Shown here: piece by piece, positions 162-27,706 of the stretch
Position numbering within the stretch: the first letter of the stretch is position 1
Layout of the letters: each line of letters begins with the position of its first letter
Source of the DNA: Macrostomum lignano
Taxonomy: Eukaryota
Length of the DNA stretch: 64,000 bases
Assembly (NCBI GenBank): GCA_002269645.1
Contig: NIVC01000264.1
Coordinates: 248,001-312,000 of the forward strand
Direction of reading: 5' to 3'
The notes under the pieces: generated by a model
The model's input: the letters and a program-made list of their open reading frames with translations, nothing else
Databases searched by the model: none
Told to the model about the DNA's origin: nothing
Program-made: the position numbers and the translations under genes

Positions 162-1387
162 ACAGCACAGCGACTGTCGTGCGCGTCTCCACAGAGCCCA
201 GTCTGCAGGTGTAGCTTCCAGCGTGCTGAGGCTGCGCTCTGGGAACCCGCAGCTCCTGTGATGCAGTGCAGCTGCCGTTTGGAAAGCAGAGCTGCTGCTG
301 CTGCACATTGGATGGCGTGAAAGTCGGCTTGCCTCCACATAGCTGAGTACAGCTGACAATGAAGCTGGAGTTCTCAGCCAGAGCACCAGGTCCTGACAGC
401 TCTGCAATGCAGATCAGAGTTTCATGGGGTTCGCATAGATGATTCAAATCAGTTTTGTTGCTTCTACGGGTAACAGGTGCAAAGTGTATTAAATAAATCC
501 TATATTTTCCCTCACTCAGCTGCACTGTTTGAAGCATCAGGTCAGTAAAGCTCAAGAAGTCATGGTAACTCGAACTGTTTGCTGCAGCAACGTTTTTACG
601 AAGCAGCAGGTGCCTCATCTGGAATTCGTTTTATTACAGATCATAATTCAGATGCTGAAGTTTCCATGCAACAAGAGGCGTAGATAAAAATGATTATAAT
701 AACTTCTTACCTTTGCAACGCAGTTTACAGTAAAGATCTCCCCAGCTGCGATCTGTGAATTGTTGCTCTCCGTGACCCCACACAGTCTCCAGTGCTGCTG
801 GGACTCTCTGAACTGGCTGCTCATGCTCATTGAGCTGCAGTGATCTCCTGAGAACAGCTGGCTGCTGCTGTCTGATGTCCAGATCTCAACGCCTCTGGCT
901 CTTTCAAAGACCCACGATGCACCATCTGGAATGCGAGAGCACCGTGAGCAGAGACAGCAGACTTGGAGCACGCATTTGAGTGAGTGATTCACCCTCTCTG
1001 CTCTTCACAGTCACAGATCTGATGAGCAGTGACTCATCCAGCTGCACTGCGAACCAGTGAAACCCGCCGTCTGCTGAGCTCTTTTCTTTGCTGTGGAAGA
1101 ACCGGTAGCTAAAGGTTTTGTTTTTGAGCACGGATTCCTCATCAGTGTGGCTTCTGTTGAAAAAGCAAGTCGGGCCGTCATCAAAGGACGACTGCCAGGT
1201 GCTCAGGACGCGGCTCTGGCGAATCGGGAACTCACCTGCAATGGTGAGCACAGGAAGTCAAGCACAAATTGGTAATTTGTTTTAGCATAGCATGAGATTC
1301 AGTAGCAAGCACAGACTTACAGTCTCCGTAGACTGTAGCGCTCACCGATGCCATCAGCAGCGACATCAAACGGAGCCAGGATCTCAT
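162..1387 (-). CDS. F-type-lectin/Ig receptor copy A (5' part; gene continues off the left edge)
   Basis: GT-AG exons 1387-1321 (signal peptide MRSWLRLMSLLMASVSATVYGD), 1235-993 (243 nt), 925-711 (215 nt), 618-516 (103 nt), 401-162 (Ig-like, VSC...HAGSYTC). Exons 2-4 match copies C, D and E in size and phase; open frame throughout. Confidence 0.85.
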
Positions 1388-2054
1388 TGACAAGTACTTT
1401 CTTCAAGATTTTATTCTCTTCTGAAGTGTCTTGTTGGCGGCGACGTATTCGGGAAAAATTCGAAAACGAACCTACGCTCGTAATTTAGCGATCTTTTGTT
1501 TAAAGTCTTTCGGACGGTCACGTGATTCACAGCATATGCATTCCTAGCCCGCCCAGTTGATGTTACCGTCCGAATATAGCCAACTGCTGCCAAGAATACC
1601 CTGCAGGAATCTTAAACTCATTCACCACTAGCAATTGCAACCAGTTTAACTGAGGTTAATAAGTGTTTGTTCCAGTCAGAAATTGGACAGCGCCTCCGTC
1701 TAAAAATTCACTAATTTGGATGCATTCGGCGCAGCTTACTGTGGTTGACAAGTAAAAATAGACACTAATTTATAAGCAAAAACCAAATTCACGGATGTCG
1801 AAGACTTTGCGCGACGAATCTGACAGAATTCATGATTGAATTTTTTTTGGCGCTTTGATAAACAAAAACTTGAACGTGAAAATTATTTCAAAGTTTTCTT
1901 AAACATCAGAATAAATACCTATTTATGTAGCAGAAAAAAATCCATTTGGACGCAACATATTCATTATAAATGAAGTTAATGTGCCACTCTGAAATGTTCA
2001 CCAAAGAACTCCATGGGCCTGCAGCTTGCAGATGCTCGATATTTTCCATTTTAT

Positions 2055-2325
2055 ATCTGGAATGCGAGAGCACCGTGAGCAGAGACAGCAGACTTGGAGC
2101 ACGCATTTGAGTGAGTGATTCACCCTCTCTGCTCTTCACAGTCACAGATCTGATGAGCAGTGACTCATCCAGCTGCACTGCGAACCAGTGAAACCCGCCG
2201 TCTGCATCGTGCTTGCCAGCGCTGTGGAAGAACCGGTAGTTGAGGGTTTTGTTTTTTATCATGAATTCCTCATCGCGGTGGCTTCTGTTGTAAAAGCAAG
2301 TCCGGCCGTCACCAAAGGACGACTG
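2055..2325 (-). pseudogene. Truncated lectin exon-2 + intron-2 fragment of the receptor family
   Basis: Encodes ...YRFFHSAGKHDADGGFHWFAVQLDESLLIRSVTVKSRE. 2055-2205 is identical to 924-1074. It breaks off at the exon-3 acceptor, with no exon 1 or exon 3. Confidence 0.8.
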
Positions 2326-3199
2326 TAGGAAGTGAAGCTATCTGAGCTATCTGATCTGAAGCTATCAGATTAAAGACAGTAAAGACAATATATTTTAAGA
2401 CCAAAATTTTTAATCTACTATTTCAGATTTCATGGTTTTAGAATCTGAAGCTTCAAATACGCTATTAATTAAGTAAGGTAATAAATAGCTAGTCAATTTA
2501 CCTGCAGCTTGAGCTGTCGGTTGCACATCTGGCCCAATTGCATGGCAGGTGTAATCAGTTATTAAACCCAAATATACTAAATTTATTACTAAAGGTGGTA
2601 TTGGAAGCATTAGGCTGAATGACACCTGTACACTAGCATTGAGAAACACTGCAAGAGGGCAAGCGACATTAATGACAAACTTACAAATGTGCAACGCATG
2701 TGCTGGCGTCAAACATGCTTCAGAAGTTTAAAACTATTGATCAGATTTAGCACCACATCAAGTGAAAACGTGTTGCAAGCTGTGTACATAAAATCAGCTG
2801 AAGCCTACACCCTGAATGTACACATTGTACATCTACATTTATATATTTACGAGTAGTAATGCAAGCGTTTGCAATTACTTTTTCGTTTTTTGGCTAGCAC
2901 CCCTAGACTGAAAAGTAGATTTTTAAAGATTAAATTTACCATATGGAAGTCAGATCATCGGAAAAGCCGAGCTTACTTGCACTTGCCAAGATAAATGCTT
3001 TCAACTTCAACTTGCTATTCCTAAAATAGAAACACTGGATGGAGTAACTCTGTGATGAACTGATTTGCTCATGAGCACCTCATCATTGCAATCGTAGAAA
3101 ATTTTAATGACCTTTTTTGTGCTGCGCGCGGCACTACAAAAAATTATTAAACTCATACTTTAACTTCACCATGCATCACCTGTGATGGGGCTGAGCTCC

Positions 3200-5211
3200 A
3201 TCAGGGCCTGGCCTGGGCCTGGCAGTTGTCCTTTGAAATCATCTTTGGTGATTCTACGTGTTTCTATCCACAAAGCGTTTCGCATGAAGATGCACGAGTT
3301 TCAGCTGCCGGTTCTTCCACAGGGCTGGCAAGAGCTCAGCAGACGGTGGGTTTCACTGGTTCGCAGTGCTCAGATAGAGACAGTGCTCATCAGATCTGTG
3401 ACTGTGAAGGGGGAGAGGATGAGTCGCTGTGCTCACGGTGCTCTCGCATTCCAGATGGGGCATGGCAAGTCTTTGAAAGTTCAATGCATCACTGCATCTC
3501 TGGAGACGGTGCGGGCTGACTGAGGGCGGCCCAAGCATTTCCGCTGGTGAAAATTTCACAGTTGATTGCATGGCTGAGGTAAATACATTTCAAATTTAAA
3601 CTGGCTGTATATATTTACTAGCAAACTCTACAATGATGGATAATAAATAATCTTACTAAGTAGAATAAACAACCTGCTGCAGAGTTGTTAGAAAGTTGTT
3701 TTTCAATAACAAATTCTCAGGCGAGGTACATTCTTCTTAGAAGAATCATTACAAACGCGGACGTCTCGAGCTCTCTTGACTACATGAGTTTCGCTGACCT
3801 CCGGCTTCAAAGGTTGCAGCTGAGTAAGTCAGGACTGTGGTGATTGCAGCTGCTCAAGTGTCAGAAATATCGTACCTGAACTGCTGCTCCCTATGAAAAA
3901 TTCTACGTTTTAGGGATCTCAGAAGCTCAAATCGTTGCGGAGAACTCCAGCTTCACAGTGAATTGCTCATTGGGCTGCACAGACCAGTCAGATGCTGGCT
4001 TAGCAGCTCTGATGCAGCTCTGCTTTCCGAGCGGCAGCTGCACTGCATCACGGGAGCTGCGGGTTCCCAGAGCACAGCCTCAACACGCTGGAAGCTACAC
4101 CTGCAGACTGGGCTCTGTGGAGAGGCGCACTGCAGTCTCTGTGCTGTGTGAGTGCAGACTTGGCATGGGCTGGCAAGCCTGTCTCTGTGCTGTGTGAGTG
4201 CAGACTTGGCATGGGCTGGCAAGCCTGTCTCTGTGCTGTGTGAGTGCAGACTTGGCATGGGCTGGCAAGCCTGTCTCTGTGCTGTGTGAGTGCAGACTTG
4301 GCATGGGCTGGCAAGCATGTCTCATTGTCTCTTTCATTTTATTTCCCACAGATTCAAATCGATGCCTTTAATTTTATGATGGTGTCAACAAATCCTGAGA
4401 AAAGCAATTTTGTCAAACTTCTATTTATTATTGATAAATATGACCATTCTTTTTCAATTCTAATATGGTCACTTAATGAATTTTACAGCATTATCCCCGC
4501 GTCAAGTGGTGATGAAGAGCTCCAGTTTCTCAGTCTGCACTGCAACTGCTCAGATCTGTGCTCAAACTCAAGCGGACTGCAGCTCTGCTTGCCGAACGGA
4601 AGCTGCACAGGCAGCCACAGGACGGCCGTTGCAGTGGCGCAGCCTCAGCACTCTGGAAGCTACACCTGCAGACTGGGCTCTGTGGCCACTCGGACTTCGG
4701 TCACCGTGCTGTGTGAGACTTTTTGAGTTTCAAAGACTGTGTTTGACTAAGTAGATCTCTTCAATGCCCTAAAAGTTCTCTCTAACCCTGAAAAGTATCT
4801 ACTCTACTCTCACCCAGTCTACAGGAAAGAAGTTCCGCGGAGCTGCTCAAGTAAATCGACTGCTCTCTCAGCAGCGGTGATCTTCACTGCTGTGGGATTC
4901 GGGTCCGGCTTCATCGCCGCTACCAGCCTCCTCTGCGCGTTCTTTCGGGTGAGTTTCCTGAGATGCAGTGAGCTCATGAGCCTTCAGCTACACATGGGCT
5001 TGGCTTCCAATTGCAGGTGTCAGCTCGGCAGAGCAGCTGCTGTCAGCAGAGGTTTGCCATCCAGGAGTCGAGAGGCGCTCAGCAAGTCGGCATGGCGAGT
5101 AGCTGGAGTCGGGGCCGAACATCGGCAGCTGGGGGACCTCCGGATGCGGCCACAGAGTATGAGAACTCTGAGTACAAGCTGGAGAATGCAGCTGGAGTTT
5201 ACGTCAGCTAG
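3200..5211 (+). pseudogene. F-type-lectin/Ig receptor copy B (pseudogene, two Ig exons)
   Basis: Exon 2 has a frameshift/stop (FAVLR*) and an ATGAGT donor. Exon 3 (3455-3578) is 124 nt vs 215 nt. Exon 4 (3721-3823) and Ig1 (3914-4147) are intact. Ig2 (4489-4712) has a 10-nt deletion. TM exon 4818-4948; tail exon 5017-5211 ends ...TEYENSEYKLENAAGVYVS*. Confidence 0.8.
4141..4320 (+). repeat. 46-bp tandem repeat (4 copies) spanning the Ig1 splice donor of copy B
   Basis: Unit GTGCTGTGTGAGTGCAGACTTGGCATGGGCTGGCAAGCCTGTCTCT at 4141, 4187, 4233 and 4279. Confidence 0.9.
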
Positions 5212-6452: not shown

Positions 6453-6874
<422 letters not shown>

Positions 6875-6919
6875 CCTGTGGCATTTCCGCTCAGGTTCCG
6901 CTTGATTATTCTATTTTGA

Positions 6920-7386: not shown

Positions 7387-10120
7387 TCAGTCAATGTAAA
7401 CCCCAGCTGCGTTCTCCAGCTTGTACTCAGAGTTCTCATAATCTGTGGCCGCATCCTGAGGTCTCCCAGCTGCTGATGCTCCGGCTCGGCTCAACTGAAA
7501 GCGAATTTTGCTGCGGATGCTGCTTACGCGAATAATAATAATAATAATAATACATAATAATACTTAATACGCAGAAGGCTGCGTACGGCTGTTCACTCCA
7601 AGGACTGGGGGGGGGGGTCGCCACACACACCCTCAATTGCCCCAGCTCATGCTGGCGCCCATTTTACAGCTGGGCGAACTGCAGCACTGCAGAGTTTAGT
7701 GTCTTGCTCAAGGACCTTATAACTGCTAGGCTACAACCCCCTTATAGCCTAAACAGTGAAAAAAAATATAGGCATCAATTCTGCATCAAGCAGCCGCTCA
7801 CCATTTCAGTTCGCTCAGCACCTGGAATCTGCTGAGCAGGTGTGGCATGACAATGGACACCTGTCAACTGCAATTATATAATATTCAAGAAATTATTGTA
7901 AATAGTGATGCCAGATGATCACAGAGTTGGTAATTCACAAACAGATCTCACTCGGAACAAAGCGCAAAGGAGGCTGGATGCAGCAAAGCCGATCCCAAAG
8001 AAAGCAGCTGCACAGGCTGCGTGCCCTTTTGCGCCGAGTTCACTCAGCTTTCCTGGGCAGCTCAGTCGAGCTCTGGCGCTGTGGACTTGCCTGAACTCGA
8101 TTCCTTCCGGGAGAGTCTGCACCGCACTGCAGGTGACCAGAGCACGGCTCAGTCCTTCATCATCAGTGTCCAGTTTCCATTGGCTGACTGAGCCATCCCT
8201 GCTCGAGCTCTGCTCGACCAGTGTCAGGCGAGTGAGATTTCTCACGAGCACTTCATCGGATTCAGCGCTGCATCTGTGCTTAGGCAGTGGCTTAGAGACA
8301 GAGGATGAGAATATAACAATCATATCTGACAGTCTCTGACAATTGTCGGACTTCTGCACTGAGATTAACACGGTTGACGGCGGGTCTGTAAGATGGGGAT
8401 CAGTGAAATGGCCTTATCCATGCTCTGGTTTAAGAAAACCCACATAAAATATGTCTAGTTAACTTATTTGAAGATAAACACTTCATTTATACAATAGATA
8501 GATACATATTCTGGATTCCGGAATTCAAAATTTTACAATTCACATAACTCCCAACAGTAATTTTGAACTGTTCCTATAAAGAAATGCGAATAATTTTATA
8601 AGCAATAGCATCGAAAAGTCGCCATCACAGAGGATTCCGTCTGTGGTCGCCACTTTTGAGAGTGCAGGTAAGGTCTCTCAATCTTTGCGAGTGACGCAAC
8701 TCAGCTACGCCGCGGCAGACTTGAGTTGAGGAGTGAAGTGGGGGGAGCGGTGTGCGAGGGTTGGGCGGATTAAAGCTACCCTGATCAGTTTTCTTGTATA
8801 TCTTTTATTTCAGAACAGTCCAAGAGAAATTGCTCACAGGCGCATAGAATAGTGACTTTCAATGTTGCTGAGGATACATAACCTCGAACTCACACAGCAC
8901 AGCGACTGTCGTGCGCGTCTCCACAGAGCCCAGTCTGCAGGTGTAGCTTCCAGCGTGCTGAGGCTGCGCTCTGGGAACCCGCAGCTCCTGTGATGCAGTG
9001 CAGCTGCCGTTCGGAAAGCAGAGCTGCTGCTGCACATTGGATGGCGTGAAGGTCGGCTTGCCTCCACACAGCTGAGTGCAGCTGACAATGAAGCTGGAGT
9101 TCTCAGCCAGAGCACCAGGTCCTGACAGCTCTGCAATGCAGATCAGAGTTTCATGGGGTTTGCATAGATGATTCAAATCAGTTTTGTTGCTTCTACGAGC
9201 AATGTAGGTGCAAAGTGTATTAAATAAATCGAATATTTTCCCTCACTCAGCTGCACTGTTTGAAGCCTCAGGTCAGTACAGCTCAAGAAGTCATGGTAAC
9301 TCGAACTGTTTGCTGCAGCAACGTTTTTACGAAGCAGCAGGTGCCTCATCTGGAATTCGTTTTATTACAGATCATAATTCAGATGCTGAAGTTTCCATGC
9401 AACAAGAGGCGTAGATAAAAATGATTATAATAACTTCTTACCTTTGCAACGCAGTTCACAGTAAAGATCTCCCCAGCTGCGATCTGTGAATTGTTGCTCT
9501 CTGTGACCCCACACAGTCTCCAGTGTTGCTGGGACTCTCTGAACTGGCTGCTCATGCTCCTTGAGCTGCAGTGATCTCCTGAGAACAGCTGGCTGCTGCT
9601 GTCTGATGTCCAGATCTCAATGCCTCTGGCTCTTTCAAAGACCCACGATGCACCATCTGGAATGCGAGAGCACCGTGAGCAGAGACTGCAGACTTTGAGC
9701 ACGCATTTGAGTGAGTGACTCACCCTCTCTGCCCTTTACAGTCACAGATCTGATGAGCACTGGCTCATTCAGCTGCACTGCGAACCAGTGAAACCCGCCG
9801 TCTGCTGAGCTCTCATTCGCGCTGTGGAAGAACCGGTAGCTGCGGGTTTTGTTTTTAATTATAAACTCCTCATCAGTGTGGCTTCTGTTGAAAAAGCAAT
9901 TCGGCCCGTCACCAAAGGACGACTGCCAGGTGCTCAGGACGCGGCTCCGTCGAATCGGGAACTCACCTGCAATCCATGGATATTTCAAGATTGCTTTATG
10001 AATTTTGATTCAAGCTTCTTTGCAGTTCCTACTCACAGTGAACTCACAGTCTGTGCGAGGTTCGGCCCTCGCTGGTGATGCCAGGAGCAGCAGAAGTATC
10101 TGAGCGGGCAGCAGTGCCAT
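7387..10120 (-). CDS. F-type-lectin/Ig receptor copy E (complete; 1 Ig; YEN-type tail)
   Basis: Exons 10120-10048 (MALLPAQILLLLLASPARAEPRTD), 9966-9724, 9656-9442, 9349-9247, 9130-8894 (Ig), 8385-7952 (juxtamembrane + TM AACAAAFFGIGFAASSLLCALFR), 7867-7802, 7494-7387 (…DYENSEYKLENAAGVYID*). All GT-AG with compatible phases. Confidence 0.85.
7531..7737 (-). mobile_element. Internally deleted family-1 SINE in the last intron of copy E
   Basis: Reverse complement of 6920-7167 with a central deletion; (TAT)n tail. Confidence 0.7.
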
Positions 10121-10788: not shown

Positions 10789-10812
10789 GATATTAATTGA
10801 CAAAGGGGGGAA

Positions 10813-13800
10813 TGTTGTGTATGGACTTTTGGTTTAGCAAATGCACTAATGCTTCCCTTCTTTTGTCTATAGTCTAGGGTACAATATTTTATTTCTTTAA
10901 GAGCCGAAGCTAACAGTATTACAAAGGGCAAACAAGACGTGCGACGGCTAGAGGCAAATAAAGCTTGTAAACAGCTCGTATTTTAAATAATGCTTCTTCG
11001 ACTTGACTTTGATGTCAGATGGTAGCCTGGAGGCAATAGTCGGTATAGAAGCAGAAGAAGAGGACATAACAATGGCGACGAGTGTAAAAATCGGAGAGTT
11101 CGACGTGGCTAAACCGGAGCAATGGGAAGCTTATGAAGAACGACTCGAGCAGTTTCTCGTCGTAAACAAAGTGACCGAGGAGGCACATAAGCGAGCAAAT
11201 CTGATTACAGTGATTGGTAATGACTGCTATCAATTGCTCCGCAACCTGCTGTCACCAAAGAAGCCCAAGGATGTGAACTTCGACGATCAAGTCAAGGCCC
11301 TGAGGGAGCATTTTAACCCAAGACCTAAGATCGTTGTCGAGAGATTCAACTTCCACAGCAGAGCCCAACATGAAGGAGAAAATGTGAGCGATTTCATCGC
11401 AAGTCTGCGGAAATTGGCTGCCACGTGTGGTTTTAATGAATTCTTGGACGAGGCACTGAGAGACAGGTGGTTCGTTGTCGGCCTAAGGAATCGCCTGACA
11501 CAGCAGCGTCTGTTGCAAGAAGACACACTGACACTAACTGGAGCACTTACCCTTGCGACTGCGATGGAAGCAGCGGAAAGAGGTGTGGTGACAATTTCGT
11601 CAACCGGTGCAATCCAGGCGGTGAAGTCTTCGAGAGCCAGTAAAAATCTGACAGACGGCTTGTCAGAGAAGAACAACAGAAACAATCAATCTGGATGCTT
11701 CCGCTGCAATGCACAAGATCACTGGGCAAAGAACTGCCCCTACCGTAGCAAGACGTGCAGCAAGTGCGGTCGAGTGGGACATAAAAGTGATGCCTGCCGC
11801 ACAAAAGACAGGACTAAAGATTCCGGAGGTGGAAAGCAAAAGAAACTCAACTCGTCCAGACATAAGAGACACGGCAGAGTGCACTATGCACAAGACAAAG
11901 CTAGTTCAACCAGCTCACACAGCAGGGACTCAAACTGTACGAGTCAGGGACACCACAGGGAGTGCTTTGAAGTCAGGACAGTGTGCTCGACTGGACAGGT
12001 CGCGCATGTCACTTCTCCACCGTACGAGTGCGAACTGGAACTGAACGGAAAAGCTGTAAGATTTCAAGTGGATACTGGTGCGGATAAAACCCTAATCAAC
12101 GAGAAGACCAGCAAGCAACTAGGCCTGAAGCTTTCAAGGACTACCGTAAGGTTGTCCAGCTACACGGATCACTCAATCCCAGTATTAGGTGAAGCAACAA
12201 TCGACGTGGTTAGCCACAACGTCCGGCTTTACCAATTGCCTGTACTGATTGTCAAAGGAGAACGAGTAAATCTGCTTGGACGCGACTGGCTTTCTAAGAT
12301 CAAGATTGACTGGGACAAGTTTGCGAGTGTGAACGTGACCACATTAGTCCAGCCTATGGATCTATTGGTAAGGAGGCATGAGCAAGTGTTTGCTGAGACA
12401 TTGGGAACCATTAAAGGATTGAAGGCCAATATAGTGCTGAAGGAGAATTCAATACCAAAGTATTTCAAAAGTCGGCCAGTTCCATTTGCAATCAAAGGTC
12501 TCATTGAGGACGAGCTCAAGAGTTTGCAAGCCCAAGGAATCATCACGAAGGTGAAGGCATCGGATTTCGCATCGCCAATCGTTCCCGTTCTCAAGCGCGA
12601 TGGAAAATCAGTGAGAATTTGCGCTGACTTTAAAAGGACAGTCAATCCACAGTTACAGGTCGATAAGTATCCTCTGCCACGACCAGAAGAAATTTTCGCA
12701 ACATTAAATGGCGGGAAATATTTTACCAAACTGGACATCTCGCAAGCATTCCTGCAGCTTGAGTTGGAAGAATCCTATAGAAGGTTTACCACTATCAACA
12801 CTCATCTCGGTCTGTTTCAATATAACCGACTCACAATGGGACTGGCATCCGCACCGGCTCAGTTTCAGGAGGCCATGGAGAAAATACTGCAGGGCCTGGA
12901 CGTCGTTGTATACATAGATGATATTCTGGTGTCTGGAACCAGTCTGGAAGACCACGATAATAGGTTGAACGCCGTGTTGGAGCGCCTTTCAGATTATGGC
13001 GTGCATTTAAACAGAAAGAAGTGTGAATTTCGTCTCAACAAGATTGCATTCCTCGGATACGTTATTGACGAAAATGGACTTCACCCATCAAACGAGAAAG
13101 TTGAGGCAATTCACAATGCACCGGCACCAACAAATGCAACCGAAGTTCGCTCTCTAATTGGAATGATAACCTACTACGCGAAGTTCATCCCGAATCTGTC
13201 GTCGATTCTGGTACCGCTCAATCGACTGTTGTGCAAGGAATCGGAGTTTCACTGGAGTGAGGAGTGCAACGCTGCATTTGACAGGGTGAAGAAAACGCTG
13301 ACGTCTGACCGAATGCTAGCGCATTTCGATCCGAAGAAGCAGCTCGTTCTACAAACGGATGCTTCAAAGTATGGAATCGGATGTGTCATCTCGCACGTGA
13401 TGCCGAATGGTGATGAAAGGCCAGTTGCCTATGCTTCGAGGACGCTATCAAAGCCGGAGATTAACTACTCGCAGTTGGAGAAGGAAGCGCTGGCCATAGT
13501 ATTCGGAGTAAAAAGGTTCCACCAGTACCTGTTTGGACATCATTTCGTGCTTGTGACGGACCATAAGCCGCTCCTAACCATCTTTGGAGACAAAAAGGAT
13601 ATCCCTAGCATCGCAGCAAGTCGTCTTCAGCGTTGGGCCGTACTTCTGTCCGCCCACCAATACACAATCAAATTTCGAAGGACAGAGGACCATTCAAATG
13701 CGGACGCGCTTTCACGCTTACCAGATCGAGCCAAGAACATCTTATGTGACAAAATTCTGGAAGTCAGACTTGAGATGCTACCGATCACGGCAGAGACGAT

Positions 13801-15672: not shown

Positions 15673-15812
15673 CCTCTCCTCTCCTCTCCTCTCCTCTCCT
15701 CTCCTCTCCTCTCCTCTCCTCTCCTCTCCTCTCCTCTCCTCTCCTCTCCTCTCCTCTCCTCTCCTCTCCTCTCCTGTCCTCTCCTCTCCTCTCCTCTCCT
15801 CTCCTCCCCTCT
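15673..15812 (+). repeat. (CTCCT)n microsatellite abutting the 3' LTR
   Basis: Direct reading. Confidence 0.95.
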
Positions 15813-16519
15813 CATAACCCCTACCTTAGAATAGAGCATAACCTTGGCGTGATTGACAACCAGGTGCTCTTTCTATGCACTCATCATGAGCCTTGAAAAT
15901 AGCAAATTAAATGCAAGCTTGATGCCCTCATTTACGGAATGCTGTCAATTTTAAAGTTAAATTAAATAAAAAATTTTCTTTTGACGTCAATGCCATATCG
16001 ACTTGTGTAGTTAATCAATTAGCAAATAGACTAACTATTAAAAGTTAAATAGCAACTTACTATTTTGATAAATTCTTTTAGAAAGAAATCTTTTTAAGAT
16101 CTGTCAAGAAAATCTATATAACTAAATGACTTTCAGTACTAAAATTAGAATGCCCCTTCTTAATTGGCAACTCAAGTTTCAGAAATGATATTTCCGCTCA
16201 AGTTTATTGGTGTTTTCGATTGCCTGCTTGTTTGTCTGACCTTTCGTATTTTCATTGTAGGCCTTGTGTATATCTGTACGGACATTATCAACTTTTATCG
16301 ATTGCCTCTACCGTGTTGCTCTCTCAAGTATCTAATGTACGGCTCGTACGCTCTGTACTCTGCAATCAAAATTACAGATGTATCGATCCAGAGGCTCTCG
16401 CCGAGAAGGGTGTTGTTTACTTTGCAGTGTTTTTGTTGCGCACTTTTGTTATACTTGTGAATCTTGCCTTCGATTTATTTAATATGGTTGATTTCCGAAA
16501 AAAAGGCCATAGTCTAGTG

Positions 16520-17997: not shown

Positions 17998-19043
17998 AAG
18001 GCAGCCGTTCTGGCGTTGTTGAAAACAACCGGAAGCTCGAGTTTGCGATGGTCTTGATGGTAGATCCGCTGCTCGCCTCCAGTACAATACTAGTCGGTTG
18101 TAGCGGATGCCTCGCGAAGAGATTCATGAAAGTCTTCGTGTTTAACAACGAAACGGTGGGGGGGGGATTGTCACTGACTATTGACTGGTTGTCGTTCCGA
18201 TGCGAGGTACACAGGTTTCCTCAAGGAGTTCATCCCCGATCAACTCTTGAAGCGTCGTGAAAAGTGCCGAAGTTGCAAGTTCTCCTAAGGCCATCATCTA
18301 GTCACCGATGCTCTCGCTGTCGTGCTGGGCTCGCTACAAAAAAGGCGAATGACGCTCTGCAATGACACTTCTTGACTTCTCTTCTGAATTTGTACTTAAA
18401 TTAAAGTACAAAAACATATTAAAAACGACGATGGTGTTTAAAATCTTCAAGAGAAGAGTGCCGGTTTGTAATGATCTGGCTTTCTTAGTCAGTTAGTGCG
18501 TTAATATTGTATATGAAAGAAAGGCTTGGCAGGACAAGATTTGAGTTTCTTTGGAAAAGCAACGTGAGTTCGAGTCCTGAGGGTCCTCCATCGTCTTCTG
18601 TCACTAGGTGCAGAAACCTGTTAATGCACCTGCTTGAGCTGCCATGACTAAATATGACAACAAGCAGGTATCAGCAATGGTAAAGTTTGCATTAACTAAC
18701 ATATTCACGCGCTGAACATGTGTTGACTTTTCCCACGTGTCCACAAAGTTAATCAGCTTGAGGGCCATCCGTCGGTGTTAAGACAATCTTAACACTGAAG
18801 TGTGTATTAGGGACGGAATCAATTATCAATAAACCAATAATAGCAATACAGCGCTAAAATTAATATTACCAAATCAAAATATAAGACTGCGTGCCCAAAT
18901 GTTTTGAATTTACTCTGAAATATAATTTTAGCATTCATATCCAGCATATAAATTGCCAGCGATCTGTAACCGTGACAGCCAACACCAACTGAGCTTTCAT
19001 CAATGTCTGAATTTCAATAAGCCACACTTATTGGTGTTTCGAC

Positions 19044-22000
19044 ATGCAAATGCCGATGTGGCTGCTGCTGCTGCTGCTGCTGCTGGCCTCATCAGTGAGC
19101 ACCAGCATCCGAGGAGACTGTGAGTGCGTTTTCACCAAATCAACAATTATAAATGAATAGCACGGAATTAAATTGAGCTGACTGCTCAGCCTGTGCTCAC
19201 CATTGCAGGCGAGTTCCCGATTCGCCAGAGCCGCGTCCTGAGCTCCTGGCAGTCGTCCTTTGATGACGGCCCGACTTGCTTTTACAACAGAAGCCGCGCT
19301 GATGAGGAATCCGTGCTCAAAAACAAAACCTTTAGCTACCGGTTCTTCCACAGCAAAGGCCAGAGCTCAGCAGACGGCGGGTTTCACTGGTTTGCAGTGC
19401 AGCTGAATGAGCCAGTGCTCATCAGATCTGTGACTGTGAAGGGCAGAGAGGGTGAGTCACTCACTCAAATGCGGGCTCAAAGTCTGCTTCCTCTGCTCAC
19501 GGTGCTCTCGCATTCCAGATCATGCATCGTGGGTCTTTGAAAGAGCCAGAGGCGTTGAGATCTGGACATCAGACAGCAGCAGCCAGCTGTTCTCAGGAGA
19601 TCACTGCAGCTCAAGGAGCATGAGCAGCCAGTTCAATCAGTCCCAGCAGCACTGGAGACTGTGTGGGGTCACGGAGAGCAACAATTCACAAATCATAGCT
19701 GGAGAGATCTTCACAGTGAACTGCGTTGCAGAGGTAAGATTACAGATAGAGATGTGTACAAAAAGTTGAAAAGCTGAGGGCGTGATCAACTCAAGTAATT
19801 AATGATCATGCAATGCATGGAGGAGGAACTCTCTTGACCTTAAATCCATTTCGATACTTATAAATCTGTTTGACACATCTTTCTAAGTCTATTTCAACAA
19901 AATTGATATGCAATTCAGACAGTTCTCGTTTCACTCTCAATTGTCTCTTAAGACAAATTCATATTAATCAGTCATCATCTTATTTAGATAAGTTTTATTC
20001 AGTCATTTGGGCGACACTTTCCAATCTTTCCAATCTTTCTATTCGATGCTGGCATGCCTAAACAGACGCATAGAAATAATTTTCTAAAATGATATTACGA
20101 AATTGCATAATGAGATATCTGAATCACAGAATTTACAAAACACACAGTATATTCTGTGGTCTGAATTGCATATCGGTTTTGTTGAATTAGACAGGGAAAA
20201 TGTGATAACTCATAACGTATTTTGTTTTATCATTCGATTCTCTCAACTTTAGACAAGGCAGCTGCTGCTCAGAAGAAACATTACGTCAGCCGATGCATCG
20301 AGCTATCACGATTACATGAGCTTTGCAGATCTCAGGCTTCAAACATTTCAGCTGGGTGAGTCCGCAACTCTGATATGTAATTCTGCAGATTGTGGATACT
20401 GTCGAAACATGAATTAATGCAAAAAGCCCATCAAGATGATGCTCTTTGAAAATCCACTTTGGAAATTTACAGAGGCCTCAAAAGCTGAGTTGGTGGCGGA
20501 GAACTCCAGCTTCTCAGTGAGCTGCGCACTGCGATGCAGCGGCCCACCGGACGCAACTTCAAGGGATCTGCAGCTCTGCTCTCCGAACGGCAGCTGCACT
20601 GCATCACAGGAGCTGCGGGTTCCCAGAGCGCAGCCTCAGCACTCTGGAAACTACACATGCAGACTGGGCTCTGTGGAAAAGCGCACTGGCGTGGCTGTGC
20701 TGTGTTAGTGGCAATACTTTGTTCGGCTTCATTTTAAATATACTTTCGGGCTTTCTCAAATGATAGAAATATTATTAAATGCTCGCATGGTCGAAACACA
20801 GAAAATTATTCTCTTTGTAAATCTTGCTGCATCACTTAACATGCATTTTTTATCAAGCTAGCATTTTCAGAAGCGGTCAAGGAATATTGTGCTAAACTCG
20901 ATCTCTCCAGCGCCCTCAGGCCCACAAGTGGTGGCGGAGAACTCCAGCTTCTCAGTGAGCTGCTCGCTGCACTGCAGCGGCTCAGATCTGTGCTCAAATT
21001 CAAGCACACTGCAGTTCTGCTTGCCGAACGGCAGCTGCACAGGCAGCCACAGGATGGCCGTTGCAGTGGCGCAGCCTCAGCACTCTGGAAGCTACACCTG
21101 CAGACTGGGCTCTGTGGCGACTCGGACTTCCGTCACCGTACTGTGTGAGCTCTTGAAACTTTATATTTTGATGTGCACAAGCGACTAATGCTTTGAAACT
21201 TCTGAAAATGCTTCCAGTGAAAAGAAGTTTATTCTAAATATTAGAACTAGAATCATGAACGAGTAGGCACACGAGTCACAACGTGGCGCACGTTTCGCAC
21301 CTGGAAATGAATGCTCTGTACATTATTTTTGTCTGACTTACGCTCGAATTCATTCCTAATTGACTTATTACACGCTTTTGTTTTCGAAAGCCCAGCTGAA
21401 CAAATGAATTTGCTTCATTGGTTGAGTAACAAAAATTACCTGCCTCTTTCTCATTCAGCATCCTCTCAGCCCCAGATCGTGGCGCAGAACTCCAGCTTCT
21501 CAGTGAGCTGCTCGCTGCACTGCAACTGCTCAGATCTGTGCTCAAACTCAAGCGGACTGCAGCTCTGCTTGCCGAACGGCAGCTGCACAGGCAGCCACAA
21601 GATGGCCGTTGCAGTGGCGCAGCCTCAGCACTCTGGAAACTACACCTGCAGACTGGGCTCTGTGGAGTCTCTGACTTCAGTCACCGTGCTGTGTGAGTGG
21701 GCGAACTACTTTGATTTGCATGTACACTCTTCTATAGATGGTTTAACTGAGAAACCTAATCGAGCACTGACTGCATCGCTGCAGACCCGCCATCGAAGGT
21801 GTACATAACATTTCTGAATCAGGGTAGCTGCGTCAGCCCATCGGATGTGACAGTGCAGTTCGCTTCCTCTGCGTCTCATCCGCGTGTTGAGCACAAATGC
21901 AGCGCCGCTGACGCCAAGGGTGTCTCACTGCTCAATATGACACGCCTGTCTTTGGTGAGTTGCAGTTTGAGAAGATATGAGTCAAGATTGGCTGACTGAA

Positions 22001-23404
22001 TCATATGACGCGATGCGCATTGCAGAGCTCGGGTGGAGATGGCTCCGTCAGCCAGTGGAAACTGGACAGCGATGGAGAACAGAGTCTGGGACTGAAAGTC
22101 CGCATCAACTGTAGCGCACTGCAGAAGCTTCCAAAAAAAATCAGCTTCCAAGCCGCCAACCTCCAGGACTCAGCTGAGCTGACCTGCCCAATGCTTGCCA
22201 CCATCCAATCTCTCACTGGTGTCCTCGCAGCATCCGCCATCTGTAGCGCCGGTCTGGTCTTCCTCAGTGCAACCATCGCAGCTCTGGTAAATGATAAGCC
22301 TCTCCTTGAGTCAGTTCTCGTCACAGACACACACTAGTTAACTTACTACGTAGATTGCTTGAAAAAAACATGAAACACCTAAATACAGCGCGTGTGCATG
22401 GCGAGCAAGAGATAAGAGGAATGGTGTCCCTGCCCCCAGCCAGGCCGATAAACAGTTAGGCGCTATGTCTAACCTTAACCTCTCTCCTTACTGCTCTCTC
22501 ATTGGCTGAGCTAGATTGGGCCTGCCCCCTAGGCTGAGTTCGTCCGTCTAACTTTCACCTCTCTCCTTACTGCTCTCTCATTGGCTGAGCTAGATTGGGC
22601 CTACCCCCCTAGGCTGAGTTTCGTCCGTCTAACTGTAACCTCTCTCCTTACTGCTCTCTCATTGGCTGGGCTAGATTGGGCCTACCCCCCTAGGCTGAGT
22701 TTCGTCCGTCTAACTTTAACCTCTCTCCTTACTGCTCTTTCATTGGCTGAGCTAGATTGGACCTACCCCCCCCCCTATGCTGAGTTTCCGTCCGTCTTGC
22801 ATTTACTGTGTACATGGAGTTAAACATTATCAACTCCATTATGCTGGTGAGGTCGGAAACCTCGAGGACGGAGAGGAAATTTTATCTGCGACAGAAAATT
22901 TAAGTGACACTGCGCAAAACAACTACTGAAAGAGTCGACGCTATATATATTTTTTTGCGAGTGGCATATCTATTTTTATATCTGCAGTTCTCGTGTACTA
23001 ATTGCACAATGCCCTGCGTTTCAGCGCAAGGCTCGGTCCAGCCACCTGCCAGCAGCCCCGCTAAACGTCAACTCAACTTGCATCGTGGACTCGGAGCTGC
23101 AAGCGGTTGCTGAAGAAGCTCCCGTACAAGGCGGGGTGAGTCTCTGCTAATGGGATAGCCATTGCTTTTTGGAATGCAAAAGACAGCGGGTCATTTGGCT
23201 TCGGTAGCGGCTGTCGGGTGCTGCTTAGATGTCAAGCAGATGGAGCCGCCTGCCCACCTCACCCGATTCCAGGCAGTCGGCAGCAGTGAACCGGAGTGCA
23301 GCTACCTCACTGTGGCCGCCGCTGCACCCGCTGGTCAGGCTAAGCTGCGCGACTCCGACAGCGAATGCACCGAGTTCATCGAGATTGTGGCTGACGGCGA
23401 CTGA
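19044..23404 (+). CDS. F-type-lectin/Ig receptor copy C (complete; 3 Ig; YLTV-type tail)
   Basis: 11 GT-AG exons: 19044-19119 (MQMPMWLLLLLLLLASSVSTSIRGD), 19209-19451, 19519-19733, 20253-20355, Ig 20473-20703, Ig 20911-21144, Ig 21459-21692, 21785-21954, 22026-22286 (TM), 23025-23135 (starts RK), 23273-23404 (...EPECSYLTV...). Phases are consistent. Confidence 0.85.
22462..22795 (+). repeat. ~80-bp tandem repeat (about 4 copies) in intron 9 of copy C
   Basis: ATTGGCTGAGCTAGATTGGGCC... recurs at 22501, 22580, 22661 and ~22742. Confidence 0.85.
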
Positions 23405-24249
23405 CTCAGCTGGGGTGCTGCTGGTTGGAGAGCAAGCAATGAACTAAACATTTAACATTTCACTCCGGCATCTGAAATTGATCTTGAATGGATCTAAGAT
23501 CCTAATGATCTTAAATTACTCGCAATAAATGAGTTAATTCAGAAATCGTTAAAACAAAACATGGTTGTTAAGTGGAAATACAAACTGGAAAATATCGAGC
23601 ATCTGGAGGCTGCAGGCCCATGGAGTTCTTTGGTGAACATTTAAGAGTGGCGCATTAGCTTCCTTTATAATGAATATGTTGCGTTCATAATGGATTTTTT
23701 TCTGCTAAATCAATTGGTATTTTACTATTTAGTCTAGTGTTTAAGAAAACTTTGAAATAATTTTCACGTTCAAGCTTTTGTTTATCAAAGCGTCAAAAAA
23801 AATTCAATCATGAATTCTGTCAGATTCGTCGCGCAAAGTCTTCGACATCCGTGAATTTGGTTCTTGTTTATAAATTAGTGTCTATTTTTACTTGTCAACC
23901 ACAGTAAGCTGCGCCGAATGCATCCAAATTAGTGAATGTTTAGAACGGAGGCGCTGTCCGATTTCTGACTGGAACAAACACTTATTAACCTCAGTTAAAC
24001 TGGTTGCAATTGCAAGTGGTGAATGAGTTTAAGATTCCTGCAGGGTATTCTTGGCAGCAGTTGGCTATATTCGGACGGTAACATCAACTGGGCGGGCTAG
24101 GAATGCATATGCTGTGAATCACGTGACCGTCCGAAAGACTTTAAACAAAAGATCGCTAATTTAAGTTTTTTTTCGAAAAATTTTCCGAATACGTCGCCGC
24201 CAACAAGACACTTCAGAAGAGAATAAAATCTTGAAGAAAGTACTTGTCA

Positions 24250-27200
24250 ATGAGATCCTGGCTCCGTTTGATGTCGCTGCTGATGGCATCGGTGAGCGCT
24301 ACAGTCTACGGAGACTGTAAGTCTGTGCTTGCTACTGAATCTCATGCTATGCTAAAACAAATTACCAATTTGTGCTTGACTTCCTGTGCTCACCATTGCA
24401 GGTGAGTTCCCGATTCGCCAGAGCCGCGTCCTGAGCACCTGGCAGTCGTCCTTTGATGACGGCCAAACTTGCTTTTACAACAGAAGCCGCACTGATGAGG
24501 AATCCGTGCTCAAAAACAAAACCTTTAGCTACCGGTTCTTCCACAGCAAAGGCCAGAACTCAGCGGACGGCGGGTTTCACTGGTTCGCAGTGCAGCTGAA
24601 TGAGCCACTGCTCATCAGATCTGTGACTGTGAAGGGCAGAGAGGGTGAGTCACTCACTCAAATGCGTGCTCCAAGTCTGCTGTCTCTGCTCACGGTGGTC
24701 TCGCATTCCAGATGACAAATCGCATGTCTTTGATAGAGCCAGAGGCATTGAGATCTGGACTTCAGACAGCAGCAGTCAGCTGTTCTCAGGAGAGCATTGC
24801 AGCTCAAGGAGCATGAGCAGCCAGTTCAGAGAGTCCCAGCAGCACTGGAGACTGTGTGGGGTCACGGAGAGCAACAATTCACAGATCATAGCTGGAGAGA
24901 TCTTCACAGTGAACTGCGTTGCAGAGGTGAGATTACAGATCGAGATATTTTTACAATAAAATCTAAAAAATCGGAGGGCGTGATTAACTCCAAATTATAT
25001 GATTGTAAAATGCATAAAAAAGGAACTCTCTTGACCTGAAATACATTTCGATACTCCCAAATCTGTCTGATAAAGTGGTGGCATCTCGTAACGCATTTTG
25101 TTTTATCATTCGATTCTCTCAACTTTAGACAAGGCAGCTGCTGCTCAGAAGAAACATTACGTCAGCCGATGCATCGAGCTCTCACGATTTCATGAGCTTT
25201 GCAGATTTCAGGCTTCAAACATTTCAGCTGGGTGAGTTCCCAACTCTGATGTGCAGTTTTGATTGAGGATAGTGTCGAAATATGAAGATGAATGCTTTAA
25301 ATTTCATCAAGAAGAAGCTCTTAATAAGCCATGTTAACAAATTACAGAAGCCTCAAAAGCTGAGTTGGTGGCGGAGAACTCCAGCTTCTCAGTGAGCTGC
25401 GCACTGCGATGCAGCGGCCCACCGGACGCCACGTCAAGGGATCTGCAGCTCTGCTCTCCAAACGGCAGCTGCACTGCATCACAGGAGCTGCGGGTTCCCA
25501 GAGCGCAGCCTCAGCACACTGGAAGCTACACCTGCAGACTGGGCTCTGTGGCGACTCGGACTTCGGTCACCGTGCTGTGTAAGTTCTTTTAACTTTACAC
25601 TTTGATGCAGTATGTCAACAATGTCATTAATTAGCAGGAGTAGACGGATTAAGTTTTTTTCAATAAAATTCGAATTTGCTGTTTAGTTAGAAACAATCTT
25701 TGCAGACCCGCCGTCGAACGTGTCAGTCCCAGTGCTGCACTGTCAGAGTCAGTCAGCTGCGATGGTGCAGTTCGCATCGTCGGCATCTGAGCCGGCGCCT
25801 GAGCACAGATGCAGCGCTGAGTCTGTTGGTAGAATGACAGCGCAGGATCTTACTCTTCAGTCACTGGTATGTTTCCTGTATGCCCTGCTCTGATAGATCC
25901 TGTGTTTTTGGAGAATCACAATACAGTATACTGATGCGGCATTGCAGAACTCAAACGAGAGCGGCTCCTTTAGTCAGTGGAAGCTGGACATTGGCCGGGA
26001 TTGGCCCAATGACGGGACTGTACTCATCAACTGCAGTGCTCTGCTGCGACAGAATCTCAGTTTCCACTTGTTCCATTCAGACACTGTGCAACTCAACTGC
26101 TCAACGGCTGTTACCATAGCAGCCCCGATCCTCTTCAGTGTCGGACTGACCCTCTTAGCTGTTGTATCAACTGCTTTGGCGGTGTTGGTGAGTCAGGAAA
26201 AACACTGCTTTAGCGTTTGCTTATTTCACAATGAGTGACGACTCTTGCAACAGTTTCAGCGCAAGGTTTGTCGGTCAAGAGACGAGCCGCCAGCAACTGG
26301 ATTGAGTCCAAACTCAAGCTGCATCGTGGCCTCCGACATTCGAATAGTTGCTGACCAAGCTCCAGTGGAACGAGAGACTCCTGTGAGTCTGGCTTGTAAT
26401 TATTATTATTAGCTCGTAAGGTGATACTGAACGAGGTATGGCCGCAGCTATTGCGCGGCGCATCTGAAGGCTGCGTACGGCTGTTCAGTCCAAGGACTGG
26501 GGGGTCGCCACACGCCCTCAATTACCCCAGCTAATGCTGGCACCCATTTTACAGCTGGGTGAATTGAAGCAACGCAGAGTTAAGTTGAGTTAAGTTATTC
26601 GCAGAGGACGCAAATTGTTCCAAGTGGGTCGAGACTCGAACCCCCGACCTTTCAGTCGTGAGTGCGACGCTCTGACCACTAGGCTACAACTTCTTAAGCG
26701 TAAATGCAATCTAAACATACTCTTATAATTTTTCTATTTCTCTCAGCAAAACACAGCCTCTTAACTTTTTTAAGAGGCAAAAATTCCAGTTATTTTTTTT
26801 GTATGTATATATTATCCTTACCAGCTGCACTGGGTGAAAGTGCATCGGAGTGGGTGACCTCTCATTGGAGTGGGTAACCTCTCATTAGAGTGGGTGCCAT
26901 CTCATTGGAGTGGGTACCATCTCATTGGAGTGGGTGACCTCTCATTGGAGTGGGTGACCTCTCATTGGAGTGGGTAACCTCTCACTGGAGTGGGTGCCAT
27001 CTCATTGTAGTGGGTGGCATCTCATTGGAGTGGATGCCATCTTATTGGAGTGGATGCCATCTCATTGGAGTGGGTACCATCTCATTGGAGTGGGTGGCAT
27101 CTCATCGGAGTGGGTGCCATCTCATTGGAGTGGGTGCCATCTCATTGGAGTGGGTGCCATCTCATTGGAGTGGGTGCCATCTCACTGGAGTGGGTGCCAT

Positions 27201-27706
27201 CTCATTGGACTGGGTGCCATCTCATTGGAGTGGGTGCCATCTCATTGGAGTGGGTGCCATCTCATTGGACTGGGTGCCATCTCATTGGAGTGGGTGCCAT
27301 CTCATTGGAGTGGGTGCCATCTCATTGTAGTGGGTGCCACCTCACTGGAGTGGTGCCATCTCATTGTAGTGGGTGCCACCTTACTGTAGTGGGTGCCATC
27401 TCATTGTAGTGGGTGCCATCTCATTGTAGTGGGTGCCATCTCACTGGAGTGGGTGCCATCTCACTGGAGTGGGTGCCATCTCACTGGAGTGGGTGCCATC
27501 TCACTGGAGTGGGTGCCATCTCACTGGAGTGGGTGCCATCTCACTGGAGTGGGTGCCACCTCACCCGATTCCAGGCAGTCGGCAGCAGTGAACCGGAGTG
27601 CAGCTACCTCACTGTGGCCGCCGCTGCACCAGCTGGTGAGGCTGAGCTGCGCGACTCCGACAGCGACTGCACAGAGTTCATCGAGATTGTGGCTGACGGC
27701 GACTGA
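24250..27706 (+). CDS. F-type-lectin/Ig receptor copy D (complete; 1 Ig; YLTV-type tail)
   Basis: Exons 24250-24316, 24402-24644, 24712-24926, 25129-25231, Ig 25348-25578, 25706-25866, 25948-26187 (TM APILFSVGLTLLAVVSTALAVL), 26260-26382, 27575-27706. Open and phase-consistent. Confidence 0.85.
26397..26690 (-). mobile_element. Family-1 tRNA/CORE-like SINE in the last intron of copy D
   Basis: Minus strand TAGCCTAGTGGTCAGAGCG (A box) and GGTTCGAGTC (B box); body matches 6920-7167; (AAT)n tail. Confidence 0.75.
26844..27562 (+). repeat. 20-bp minisatellite (CTCATTGGAGTGGGTGCCAT)n
   Basis: Direct reading; runs up to the 3' splice region of the last exon of copy D. Confidence 0.95.

Follow-up and report, generated by a model that had tools for sequence, protein, structure and literature searches.

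A tandem cluster of genes for probable membrane proteins with a divergent F-type-lectin-like domain in Macrostomum lignano

The gene cluster and its exon architecture

The DNA considered here is a stretch of 64,000 nucleotides (nt) of the flatworm Macrostomum lignano (contig NIVC01000264.1, positions 248,001 to 312,000, forward strand), hereafter called the window, in which six units of one gene family lie on both strands between positions 162 and 27706. Four of these units are intact (copies A, C, D and E), one is decayed (copy B) and one is a fragment (A'). When the exons of the intact copies were translated and spliced, all introns proved to be of the GT-AG type, all joins were in frame and the phases were the same in each copy. 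Exons 2, 3 and 4 measure 243, 215 and 103 nt with phases 1, 1 and 0 in A, C, D and E alike, and the immunoglobulin (Ig) exons that follow them comprise 231-240 nt and are of phase 1-1. A probe of 28 nt, taken at the 3' end of intron 2, matched the six units only and found nothing in 100 shuffles. The first-pass annotation of the window, which was made from the letters alone, had reported that the exon set recurs at least five times on both strands, accompanied by fragments; coordinates and exon sizes bear this out, with six units, and the peptide string quoted there (FFHS...HWFAVQL...IRSVTVKGRED...ERARGVEIW...CG...FTVNC...LLLR) is indeed the product of the spliced exons. The window genes represent a real tandem cluster, which likely encodes type-I membrane proteins of Macrostomum lignano.

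The largest member is copy D (19044..23404, plus strand), a complete gene of 11 exons for 669 amino acids (aa) with three Ig exons and a tail that we call type II. Its exons are located at 19044-19119, 19209-19451, 19519-19733, 20253-20355, 20473-20703, 20911-21144, 21459-21692, 21785-21954, 22026-22286, 23025-23135 and 23273-23404; exons 2-4 (19209..20355) encode the F-type-lectin-like domain of approximately 187 aa, and the three Ig exons (20473..21692; 231, 234 and 234 nt) are of phase 1-1. Copy E (24250..27706, plus strand) is likewise complete, with 9 exons for 504 aa, one Ig exon and a type-II tail (exons 24250-24316, 24402-24644, 24712-24926, 25129-25231, 25348-25578, 25706-25866, 25948-26187, 26260-26382 and 27575-27706). 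Introns of both genes house minisatellites, in D an 81-nt unit repeated 4 times (22467-22797) and in the last intron of E a 20-nt unit repeated 36 times (26843-27563).

Copy C (7387..10120, minus strand) is a complete gene of 8 exons for 492 aa, in which the signal exon and the lectin-like domain are followed by one Ig domain, the stalk with the transmembrane helix and a tail of type I (exons 10120-10048, 9966-9724, 9656-9442, 9349-9247, 9130-8894, 8385-7952, 7867-7802 and 7494-7387). Its two stalk exons, which an intron separates in D and E, are fused, and this intron has shrunk to nine in-frame bases, GTCGAGCAG, at 8223-8215 on the minus strand. This remnant retains the GT start and the AG end of an intron and is read through; the same read-through occurs in the M. 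lignano protein P0002. Of copy A (162..1387, minus strand), the window holds the intact 5' part, i.e. the signal exon (1387-1321, 67 nt), the lectin-like exons 2-4 (1235-993, 243 nt; 925-711, 215 nt; 618-516, 103 nt) and one Ig exon (401-162, 240 nt), all bounded by GT-AG introns and in frame, and the remainder lies beyond the window start.

Copy B (3193..5211, plus strand) is a probable pseudogene as judged from its lesions. Besides a decayed lectin-like part and exon 4, it has two Ig exons and one exon each for the transmembrane helix and the type-I tail. The sequence corresponding to exon 2 (3193-3418) carries many indels of 1, 2, 4 and 5 nt and has lost its donor (GA for GT), the one corresponding to exon 3 is shortened and ends at 3569, and a search for a signal exon of this copy found none. 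Exon 4 and the downstream exons are located at 3721-3823, 3914-4147, 4489-4712, 4825-4948 and 5017-5211; among them the second Ig exon (4489-4712) has 224 nt and suffers a frameshift from a 10-nt deletion. The end of the first Ig exon together with its GT donor is part of a 46-nt unit that is present in 4.1 tandem copies of 99% identity (4135-4323), which offers four successive candidate donors. Fragment A' (2057..2330, minus strand) comprises the 3' 208 nt of exon 2, which align with positions 36-243 of exon 2 of copy D, and the entire intron 2, identical to that of copy A. The homology stops 2 nt past the intron 2 acceptor.

Immunoglobulin domains, membrane helix and tails

The Ig domains and the transmembrane helix with its tail, both of which had been claimed at first reading, were recovered. 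In copy D, the Pfam model Ig_2 is matched in three stretches with 36.7 bits against a cut-off of 27 bits (E 5e-9). Each Ig exon encodes a domain of 77-80 aa with the pattern SxSC...GxYTC (e.g. SVSC...SGNYTC), and the second and third Ig domains of D are 84% identical at the protein level. The number of Ig exons varies from three in D and two in B to one each in C and E and none in P0004, a member from another locus. Past the Ig exons, two exons (those fused in C) code for a membrane-proximal stalk, which contains Cys, and for one hydrophobic helix, which is followed by Arg/Lys.

Topology was assessed by hydropathy in a 19-residue window with a threshold of at least 2.0, by which one segment near the C-terminus passes, and in D the hydrophobic N-terminus as well; the signal peptide is putative. 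The proteins contain 8-19 N-glycosylation sequons, which are all N-terminal to the helix, except that D and E each have one in the tail. Signal peptide, one helix and cytoplasmic tail agree with a type-I single-pass topology.

Two types of tail exist in the family, both of them short and acidic and with conserved motifs around Tyr. Type I, found in C and B and in the paralogs P0001, P0002 and P0003, ends in ...(D/E)YENSEYKLENA(A/T)G(V/I)Y(I/V)x with D, L or S at x; the tail of copy C reads ...DYENSEYKLENAAGVYID and includes the tyrosine motifs YENS, EYKL and VYID. Type II, found in D and E and in P0004 and P0005, has EPECSYL(T/S)V and, approximately 25 residues further on, CT(E/V)(F/Y)(I/L)EIVA, so that the tail of copy D reads ...EPECSYLTV...CTEFIEIVADGD. 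The motif ECSYLTV of D and E has Cys at position -2. A site resembling the immunoreceptor tyrosine-based switch motif (ITSM), TxYxxI, occurs only in the paralogs P0004 and P0005 (TVYLEI) and P0027 (TEYLDI), and the corresponding site of D and E is TEFIEI with Phe for Tyr. Signalling competence, as proposed in the first-pass annotation, is something we infer from this tail pattern.

Relationship of the N-terminal domain to F-type lectins

The kinship of the N-terminal domain emerged from profile searches. A broad profile of 21 sequences, which included distant M. lignano subfamilies, was compared with 177,635 distinct PDB sequences, and all six matches at E <= 10 are F-type lectins: striped bass FBP32 (3cqo, E 2.3e-5), eel agglutinin (1k12, E 8.2e-4), two lectinolysin sequences and two pneumococcal fucolectin-related (SpX) modules. 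Searches of the PDB with a single sequence or a 10-sequence profile gave nothing relevant. With hhalign, the comparison to a 5-sequence profile for F-type lectin domains (FTLDs) gave a probability of 88.8% and a score of 42.9 (across runs 87-89%, P about 2-4e-6), whereas 100 column shuffles of the FTLD profile scored 11.6 +/- 1.9 and at most 17.3, and the same profile in reverse reached 7.1. Single-sequence scores were 39 against eel agglutinin 1k12 and 19 against factor VIII C2. Matches below threshold to the Pfam families PF00754 (F5_F8_type_C) and PF22633 (F5_F8_type_C_2) were obtained in seven of ten members (E 0.0009-0.03). Genuine FTLDs taken from the PDB alignments match the same two families, PF22633 first, with 55-87 bits. 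Of the F5/8-type C and Ig hits expected at first reading, those to Ig passed the Pfam cut-off and those to F5/8-type C stayed below it.

For structural comparison, an AlphaFold2 model of the paralog P0001 served as Foldseek query; the window exons entered as partial rows of the alignment. With a 21-row alignment the model reached a predicted local distance difference test score (pLDDT) of 88.4 and a predicted template modelling score of 0.87. In the PDB, FTLDs occupy the top five ranks and seven of the top nine (E 2-5e-6), with target-normalised TM-scores of 0.61-0.67, apart from 3cqo with 0.34, a chain with two such domains; galactose oxidase, muskelin, CBM32 and other jelly rolls come close behind. 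This model replaced an earlier one from a 13-row alignment, which was mediocre (pLDDT 73.7) and matched jelly rolls in general; factor VIII C2, UBR4 and CBM32 headed its list, and FTLDs came no higher than ranks 20 and 46. A domain that did not adopt a discoidin or F-type fold in modelling had been named beforehand as an outcome that would speak against the lectin proposal; the model does adopt such a fold, and of the possible assignments the F-type one has the best support. The statement that the domain is F-type-lectin-like therefore stands, since the PDB profile matches are exclusively FTLDs, hhalign gives 87-89% and the top Foldseek matches of the model are FTLDs. As far as profiles and the model can tell, the N-terminal domain is best supported as a highly divergent member of the FTLD branch with a galactose-binding-domain-like jelly-roll fold.

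Which residues correspond to those of eel agglutinin was established by HMMER and HHalign, which agree. Several blocks are kept: WQSS corresponds to ATQSS, HWFAVQL to PWWRVDL, SVTVKGRED to SVTITNRGD, ERARGVEI to ERISGAEI and the C-terminal LRLQT strand to LCEVEV. FFH aligns with F45-Y46-H47, hence the aromatic pair of the fucose methyl pocket is retained. The canonical fucose motif is H-X24-R-X-D-X4-(R/K), representing His52, Arg79 and Arg86 of eel agglutinin (feature definitions from PMC5712786). Arg79 aligns with Arg, and Asp81 is Asp in the window copies and Tyr or Val in some paralogs; Arg86 corresponds to the conserved Arg of ERARG. The domain is approximately 45 residues longer than a canonical FTLD and has helical insertions. 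Paralog-conserved blocks are the core strands, and the variable segments are, in domain numbering, 31-44, 52-56, 85-94, 136-141, 153-157 and 166-175. The inter-arginine loop (85-94), which is 3 residues longer than the canonical one, belongs to the segments that differ most from paralog to paralog.

The His/Arg/Arg sugar pocket that had been read from the sequence at first finds no support in that form. Both alignments rule out that the His of FFHS is the fucose-binding one, it corresponds to His47. Considering the residues kept and lost, "divergent F-type-lectin-like domain" is the most fitting name for it.

Relatives in Macrostomum lignano

Relatives of the family are recognisable among approximately 15 billion proteins, and all of them belong to Macrostomum lignano except one from a metagenome contig. 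A profile of the N-terminal domain yielded 21 matches among 1.84 billion cluster representatives, again all from M. lignano but one on a 1.6-kb JGI metagenome contig; no other flatworm or animal was reached in this profile search at the sensitivity of HMMER. Within the range of these searches, the family is restricted to the Macrostomum lignano lineage. The metagenome relative is an uninterrupted 636-nt frame (L002, 284-919, JGI sample 3300040801) and is intronless where the flatworm genes have two introns; the contig may be transcript-derived or come from another small eukaryote.

Close counterparts of the window genes exist in the databases. P0006 and P0007 are 100% identical to exons 3-5 of copy D and share the same junctions, and copy C is, piece by piece, 77-100% identical to P0002. 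On another M. lignano contig (L001, NIVC01002544.1), at least three more members and a fragment lie inside 22 kb and have 0-3 Ig exons; counting this second cluster, the family is arranged in several tandem clusters. In the L001 member closest to copy D, the intron-2 end is conserved (19019-19046), with CAT at the CAG acceptor, and this member may be a pseudogene or use another acceptor. P0004, P0016 and P0027 are GenBank NIVC01 gene models, and the NIVC01 annotation was made from RNA-seq assemblies (PMC5730564). Hence, paralogs with the same exon junctions are transcribed.

The database names of the relatives are "hypothetical protein", "Ig-like domain-containing" or automatic labels at odds with each other, and no precomputed Pfam domain was found for the relatives in the homolog-search lists (P0017, P0019, P0020 and P0025 were not looked up). 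The automatic UniRef names, such as Fibrinogen C-terminal, CUB, MATH, SRCR, Sushi and Ricin B, were not used here, as no precomputed Pfam domain stands behind them. Unrelated automatic UniRef names, also Coatomer zeta and RNase H, are carried by P0008, P0009, P0010, P0017, P0019, P0020 and P0025. Several models are evident mis-predictions: P0010 continues across the region upstream of copy E or A, and P0009 fuses a tail to exon 2 of the next gene. P0017 (2224 aa) has the C-terminal half of a family member at the end of a model named "RNase H domain-containing" in UniRef and is possibly a fusion with a retroelement.

Evolution of the copies

Pairwise comparison of exons 2-4 by the Nei-Gojobori method gave a synonymous divergence (dS) of 0.07-0.37 and a ratio of nonsynonymous to synonymous divergence (dN/dS) of 0.30-0.62 over the whole domain. 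Judged by these values, the duplicates are young and under relaxed or overall purifying selection. The same values give no sign of positive selection over the whole domain, and "diversified", as the family had been called, is in this sense not borne out.

Birth-and-death evolution, which had been proposed as well, is supported by the pseudogene, the fragment, the variable number of Ig exons and the mosaic copies. Copy A is a clean mosaic. Its upstream region over more than 500 bp, the first two exons with the intron between them and most of intron 2 resemble copy E (approximately 330 informative sites vs approximately 14), and the part from exon 3 to the Ig exon, introns included, resembles copy C (approximately 215 sites vs approximately 7); the switch point lies at window positions 956-939, within intron 2. 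This 67-nt intron (926-992 in A, 2057-2123 in A', 9657-9723 in C, 19452-19518 in D and 24645-24711 in E) is 93-97% identical in the intact copies, as compared to 59-83% for the other introns between subgroups, and is as conserved as the flanking exons or above them. Moreover, two independent breakpoints, the switch in copy A and the end of A', fall in intron 2 or at its acceptor. An RNA structure as the cause of the conservation has weak support (fold z = -1.98 vs shuffles). The conservation is limited to the closest subfamily, being found in one of three members at locus L001, and because of this confinement it is accounted for by recent duplication or gene conversion.

Read from the copies themselves, turnover of the family is by tandem duplication, exon duplication, recombination in intron 2 and pseudogenisation. 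It must be mentioned that M. lignano assemblies are redundant and that the chimeric copy A is situated at the window edge. The breakpoint of copy A in a conserved 67-nt intron provides a small, concrete example of exon shuffling in a young gene family.

Weighing the interpretation

The data presented above are probably best explained by type-I membrane proteins that carry a divergent F-type-lectin-like domain on a spacer of Ig domains and stalk. Several observations weigh against this interpretation. The fucose motif is absent in its canonical form, since His52 is Ser and the second Arg follows the Asp of RxD after 7 residues instead of 4. The calcium motif h2DGx is missing, with SVLKNK or AVLSKP aligned to AIDGN, and so is the pair Cys82-Cys83, which stacks on fucose in the known lectins (PMC5712786); the loop after RxD is HASWVF, GASWVF or DKSHVF, without Cys-Cys. 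At the level of domain models, the Pfam thresholds were missed, with approximately 17 bits vs cut-offs of 27.8 and 28.2. The Foldseek E-values of CBM32 and other jelly rolls are just 2-5 times weaker than those of FTLDs, and the structure is a model of P0001, which is 60% identical to D, not of a window protein. Inspection of the window tails revealed neither a canonical immunoreceptor tyrosine-based inhibitory motif (ITIM) nor an activation motif (ITAM). The patterns looked for were (S/I/V/L)xYxx(I/V/L), YxxL-x6-12-YxxL and TxYxx(V/I) for ITIM, ITAM and ITSM, respectively. Finally, transcript-derived support is confined to the paralogs P0004, P0016 and P0027, and the window genes are predicted from sequence.

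If the lectin-like interpretation is correct, the N-terminal domain would be distal at the cell surface and bind its ligand at the loop-ringed top of the barrel, where both arginines (R79 and R86 of eel agglutinin) and the aromatic pair F45/Y46 would be placed at the binding face. The ligand would most likely be a glycan. It would not necessarily be fucose, because His52, Cys82-Cys83 and the calcium site are missing. Paralog-specific loops might set the specificity, the Ig and stalk domains would act as spacers and the tail could lead to sorting or to tyrosine-based signalling.

Among the possible roles, we tentatively rank immune or environmental sensing first, followed by adhesion or mating and by a non-lectin module; these roles are partly compatible with each other. 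The first-pass annotation had favored a diversified, signalling-competent innate-recognition family analogous to the snail FREPs. Spelled out, these would be immune receptors of a flatworm that bind microbial fucosylated glycans and signal via tail tyrosines. This role is possible but doubtful. The distal lectin-like domain with Ig on a membrane anchor, the lineage-specific tandem expansion with pseudogenes and exon shuffling, the variable loop beside retained arginines and the ITSM-like TxYxxI in the tails of some paralogs (P0004, P0027) all fit it, and F-type lectins act in immunity elsewhere (PMC5712786). However, whole-domain dN/dS stays under 1, neither the fucose-binding His nor the calcium site nor the Cys-Cys pair is present, and in D and E the ITSM-like site has Phe for its tyrosine in tails devoid of canonical ITIM or ITAM. 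Somewhat less probable is a role in cell adhesion, as for Drosophila Furrowed, or in sperm-egg or mating-partner recognition, as for oyster bindin. Furrowed has a membrane-anchored FTLD with a partly replaced triad, and bindin FTLD isoforms, half of them without the triad, diversify by recombination (PMC5712786), which was observed between the window copies as well; furthermore, reproduction-related genes of M. lignano are reported as fast-evolving (PMC7336406). But bindin is secreted, has tandem FTLDs and lacks Ig and a transmembrane helix, and the CTLD and CCP domains of Furrowed are absent from the window proteins according to the Pfam scan.

The domain could also be a generic galactose-binding-domain-like or discoidin module which lost sugar binding and has a protein or lipid ligand, comparable to factor V/VIII C2. 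In its favor, one triad residue of three has been lost along with the calcium site and the Cys-Cys pair, many non-lectin jelly rolls are nearly as good in Foldseek and the Pfam matches remain below threshold. Nevertheless, we consider it unlikely, more so than the adhesion role, in view of sequence-profile matches that are exclusively FTLDs, the much weaker similarity to factor VIII C2 and the retention of both arginines and of the aromatic pair. The most sceptical explanation, an assembly artefact or a functionless array of dead pseudogenes, could point to the known redundancy of the M. lignano assembly (PMC5730564), to copy A as a clean E/C chimera at the window edge and to the dead copy B and fragment A'. 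It is nonetheless highly improbable, because four copies have intact frames over 5-11 exons with canonical splice sites, dN/dS is below 1, the copies differ in orientation, intron sizes, Ig exon number and tail type, and paralogs elsewhere are transcript-derived gene models.

A more far-reaching idea, which we offer as speculation, is that Macrostomum has assembled its own family of membrane immune-type receptors out of a divergent F-type lectin domain and Ig exons. Recombination at a conserved intron would give new sets of recognition loops and Ig domains, and two kinds of tail, one of activating and one of inhibitory type, might work as a pair to tune signalling. The pairing would be between type-I tails with YxN and type-II tails with ITIM-like and ITSM-like motifs, in some of which Tyr is replaced by Phe. 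If true, a flatworm would have arrived independently at a variable receptor system of the lectin-Ig kind.

Comparison with known systems

The known FTLDs (eel agglutinin AAA, 1K12; FBP32, 3CQO; lectinolysin; SpX) share the jelly-roll fold with the window domain, align with it end to end and are its best structural and its sole sequence-profile matches in the PDB. The window domain differs by its fusion to Ig domains and a transmembrane helix. According to a 2025 review, the partner domains of FTLDs are CTLD, pentraxin, CCP, FA58C, HTLD and transmembrane, with Ig not among them (PMC12221842), and the reviews of F-type lectins consulted here do not list Ig as a partner and mention flatworms once, as "planaria". 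Drosophila Furrowed (CG9095) is likewise membrane-anchored with a single FTLD and an incomplete basic triad (PMC5712786), but its other domains are a C-type lectin domain and numerous CCP repeats, with no Ig, and it is a single conserved gene instead of a lineage-specific tandem family. Oyster bindin also uses an F-type lectin scaffold, diversifies within the species by duplication and recombination and has many isoforms without the His-Arg-Arg triad (PMC5712786); in contrast to the window proteins it is an acrosomal protein that is secreted and consists of 1-5 lectin repeats, without Ig, transmembrane helix and tail. The loss of parts of the triad is on record for Furrowed and for half of the bindin isoforms (PMC5712786).

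Snail FREPs similarly combine Ig with a carbohydrate-recognition-type domain in a multigene family with recombination among members. However, they are secreted and have N-terminal Ig and C-terminal fibrinogen, whereas the window proteins have the reverse order, another fold and a membrane anchor; no fibrinogen domain was found in the Pfam scan of the window proteins, which places them outside the FREPs. Discoidin or F5/F8-type C receptors (neuropilin b1/b2, DDR, factor VIII C2) have the same superfold and include membrane receptors with a distal jelly-roll domain, but their sequence similarity is weaker than that of F-type lectins (hhalign 19 vs 39) and none of them is among the PDB profile matches.

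In the literature on Macrostomum lectins and recognition and under the gene identifiers, we found no account of the family or of the F-type-lectin-Ig-transmembrane architecture. The earlier impression that this architecture is undescribed agrees with this outcome of the literature searches on FTLDs and Macrostomum. New, as far as these searches reach, is the combination of FTLD, Ig and transmembrane helix; the fold itself is well studied, and invertebrate lineages with their own expansions of lectin receptors are known in general. The fold is too diverged for the domain databases, and its recognition provides a biochemical hypothesis, open to testing, for approximately twenty protein clusters of M. 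lignano. Macrostomum lignano is transparent and accessible to RNA interference. Transgenesis is established in this species as well (PMC5730564). If the family should be a recognition system, M. lignano would be a convenient organism for its study.

Other features of the window

Between copies C and D, a Ty3/gypsy retrotransposon is inserted (10789-15672), the long terminal repeats (LTRs) of which (10789-11071 and 15389-15672) are 99-100% identical and enclose an uninterrupted frame of 1331 aa for gag, protease, reverse transcriptase, RNase H and integrase (11003-14998, plus strand). This element is young. Directly 3' of its 3' LTR, a (CCTCT)n run extends over 15673-15813. The window is unusually rich in minisatellites, with 31 rows in the tandem-repeat scan, some of which are overlapping descriptions of one array; further repeats are a 21-nt unit present 80 times (60328-62016) and a (GAGGA)n stretch (62462-63219).

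Downstream of the cluster, a mariner/Mos1-type transposase frame of 265 aa (30214-31011, minus strand) matches Pfam HTH_48, Transposase_1 and DDE_3, and the element is probably truncated. It is followed by exons of tubulin-specific chaperone D (TBCD; approximately 31400-44200, minus strand; Pfam ARM_TBCD_2nd, E 1e-39). Inside a TBCD intron and on the opposite strand, a P-element/THAP9-like transposase frame of 549 aa with a TNP-like RNase H domain is located (35849-37498, plus strand). The remaining features are an exon of a nucleoside 2-deoxyribosyltransferase-like protein of the DNPH1 type (45926-46297, minus strand) and an exon of a rhodopsin-family G-protein-coupled receptor of 307 aa (58448-59371, minus strand; 7tm_1, E 8.5e-32).

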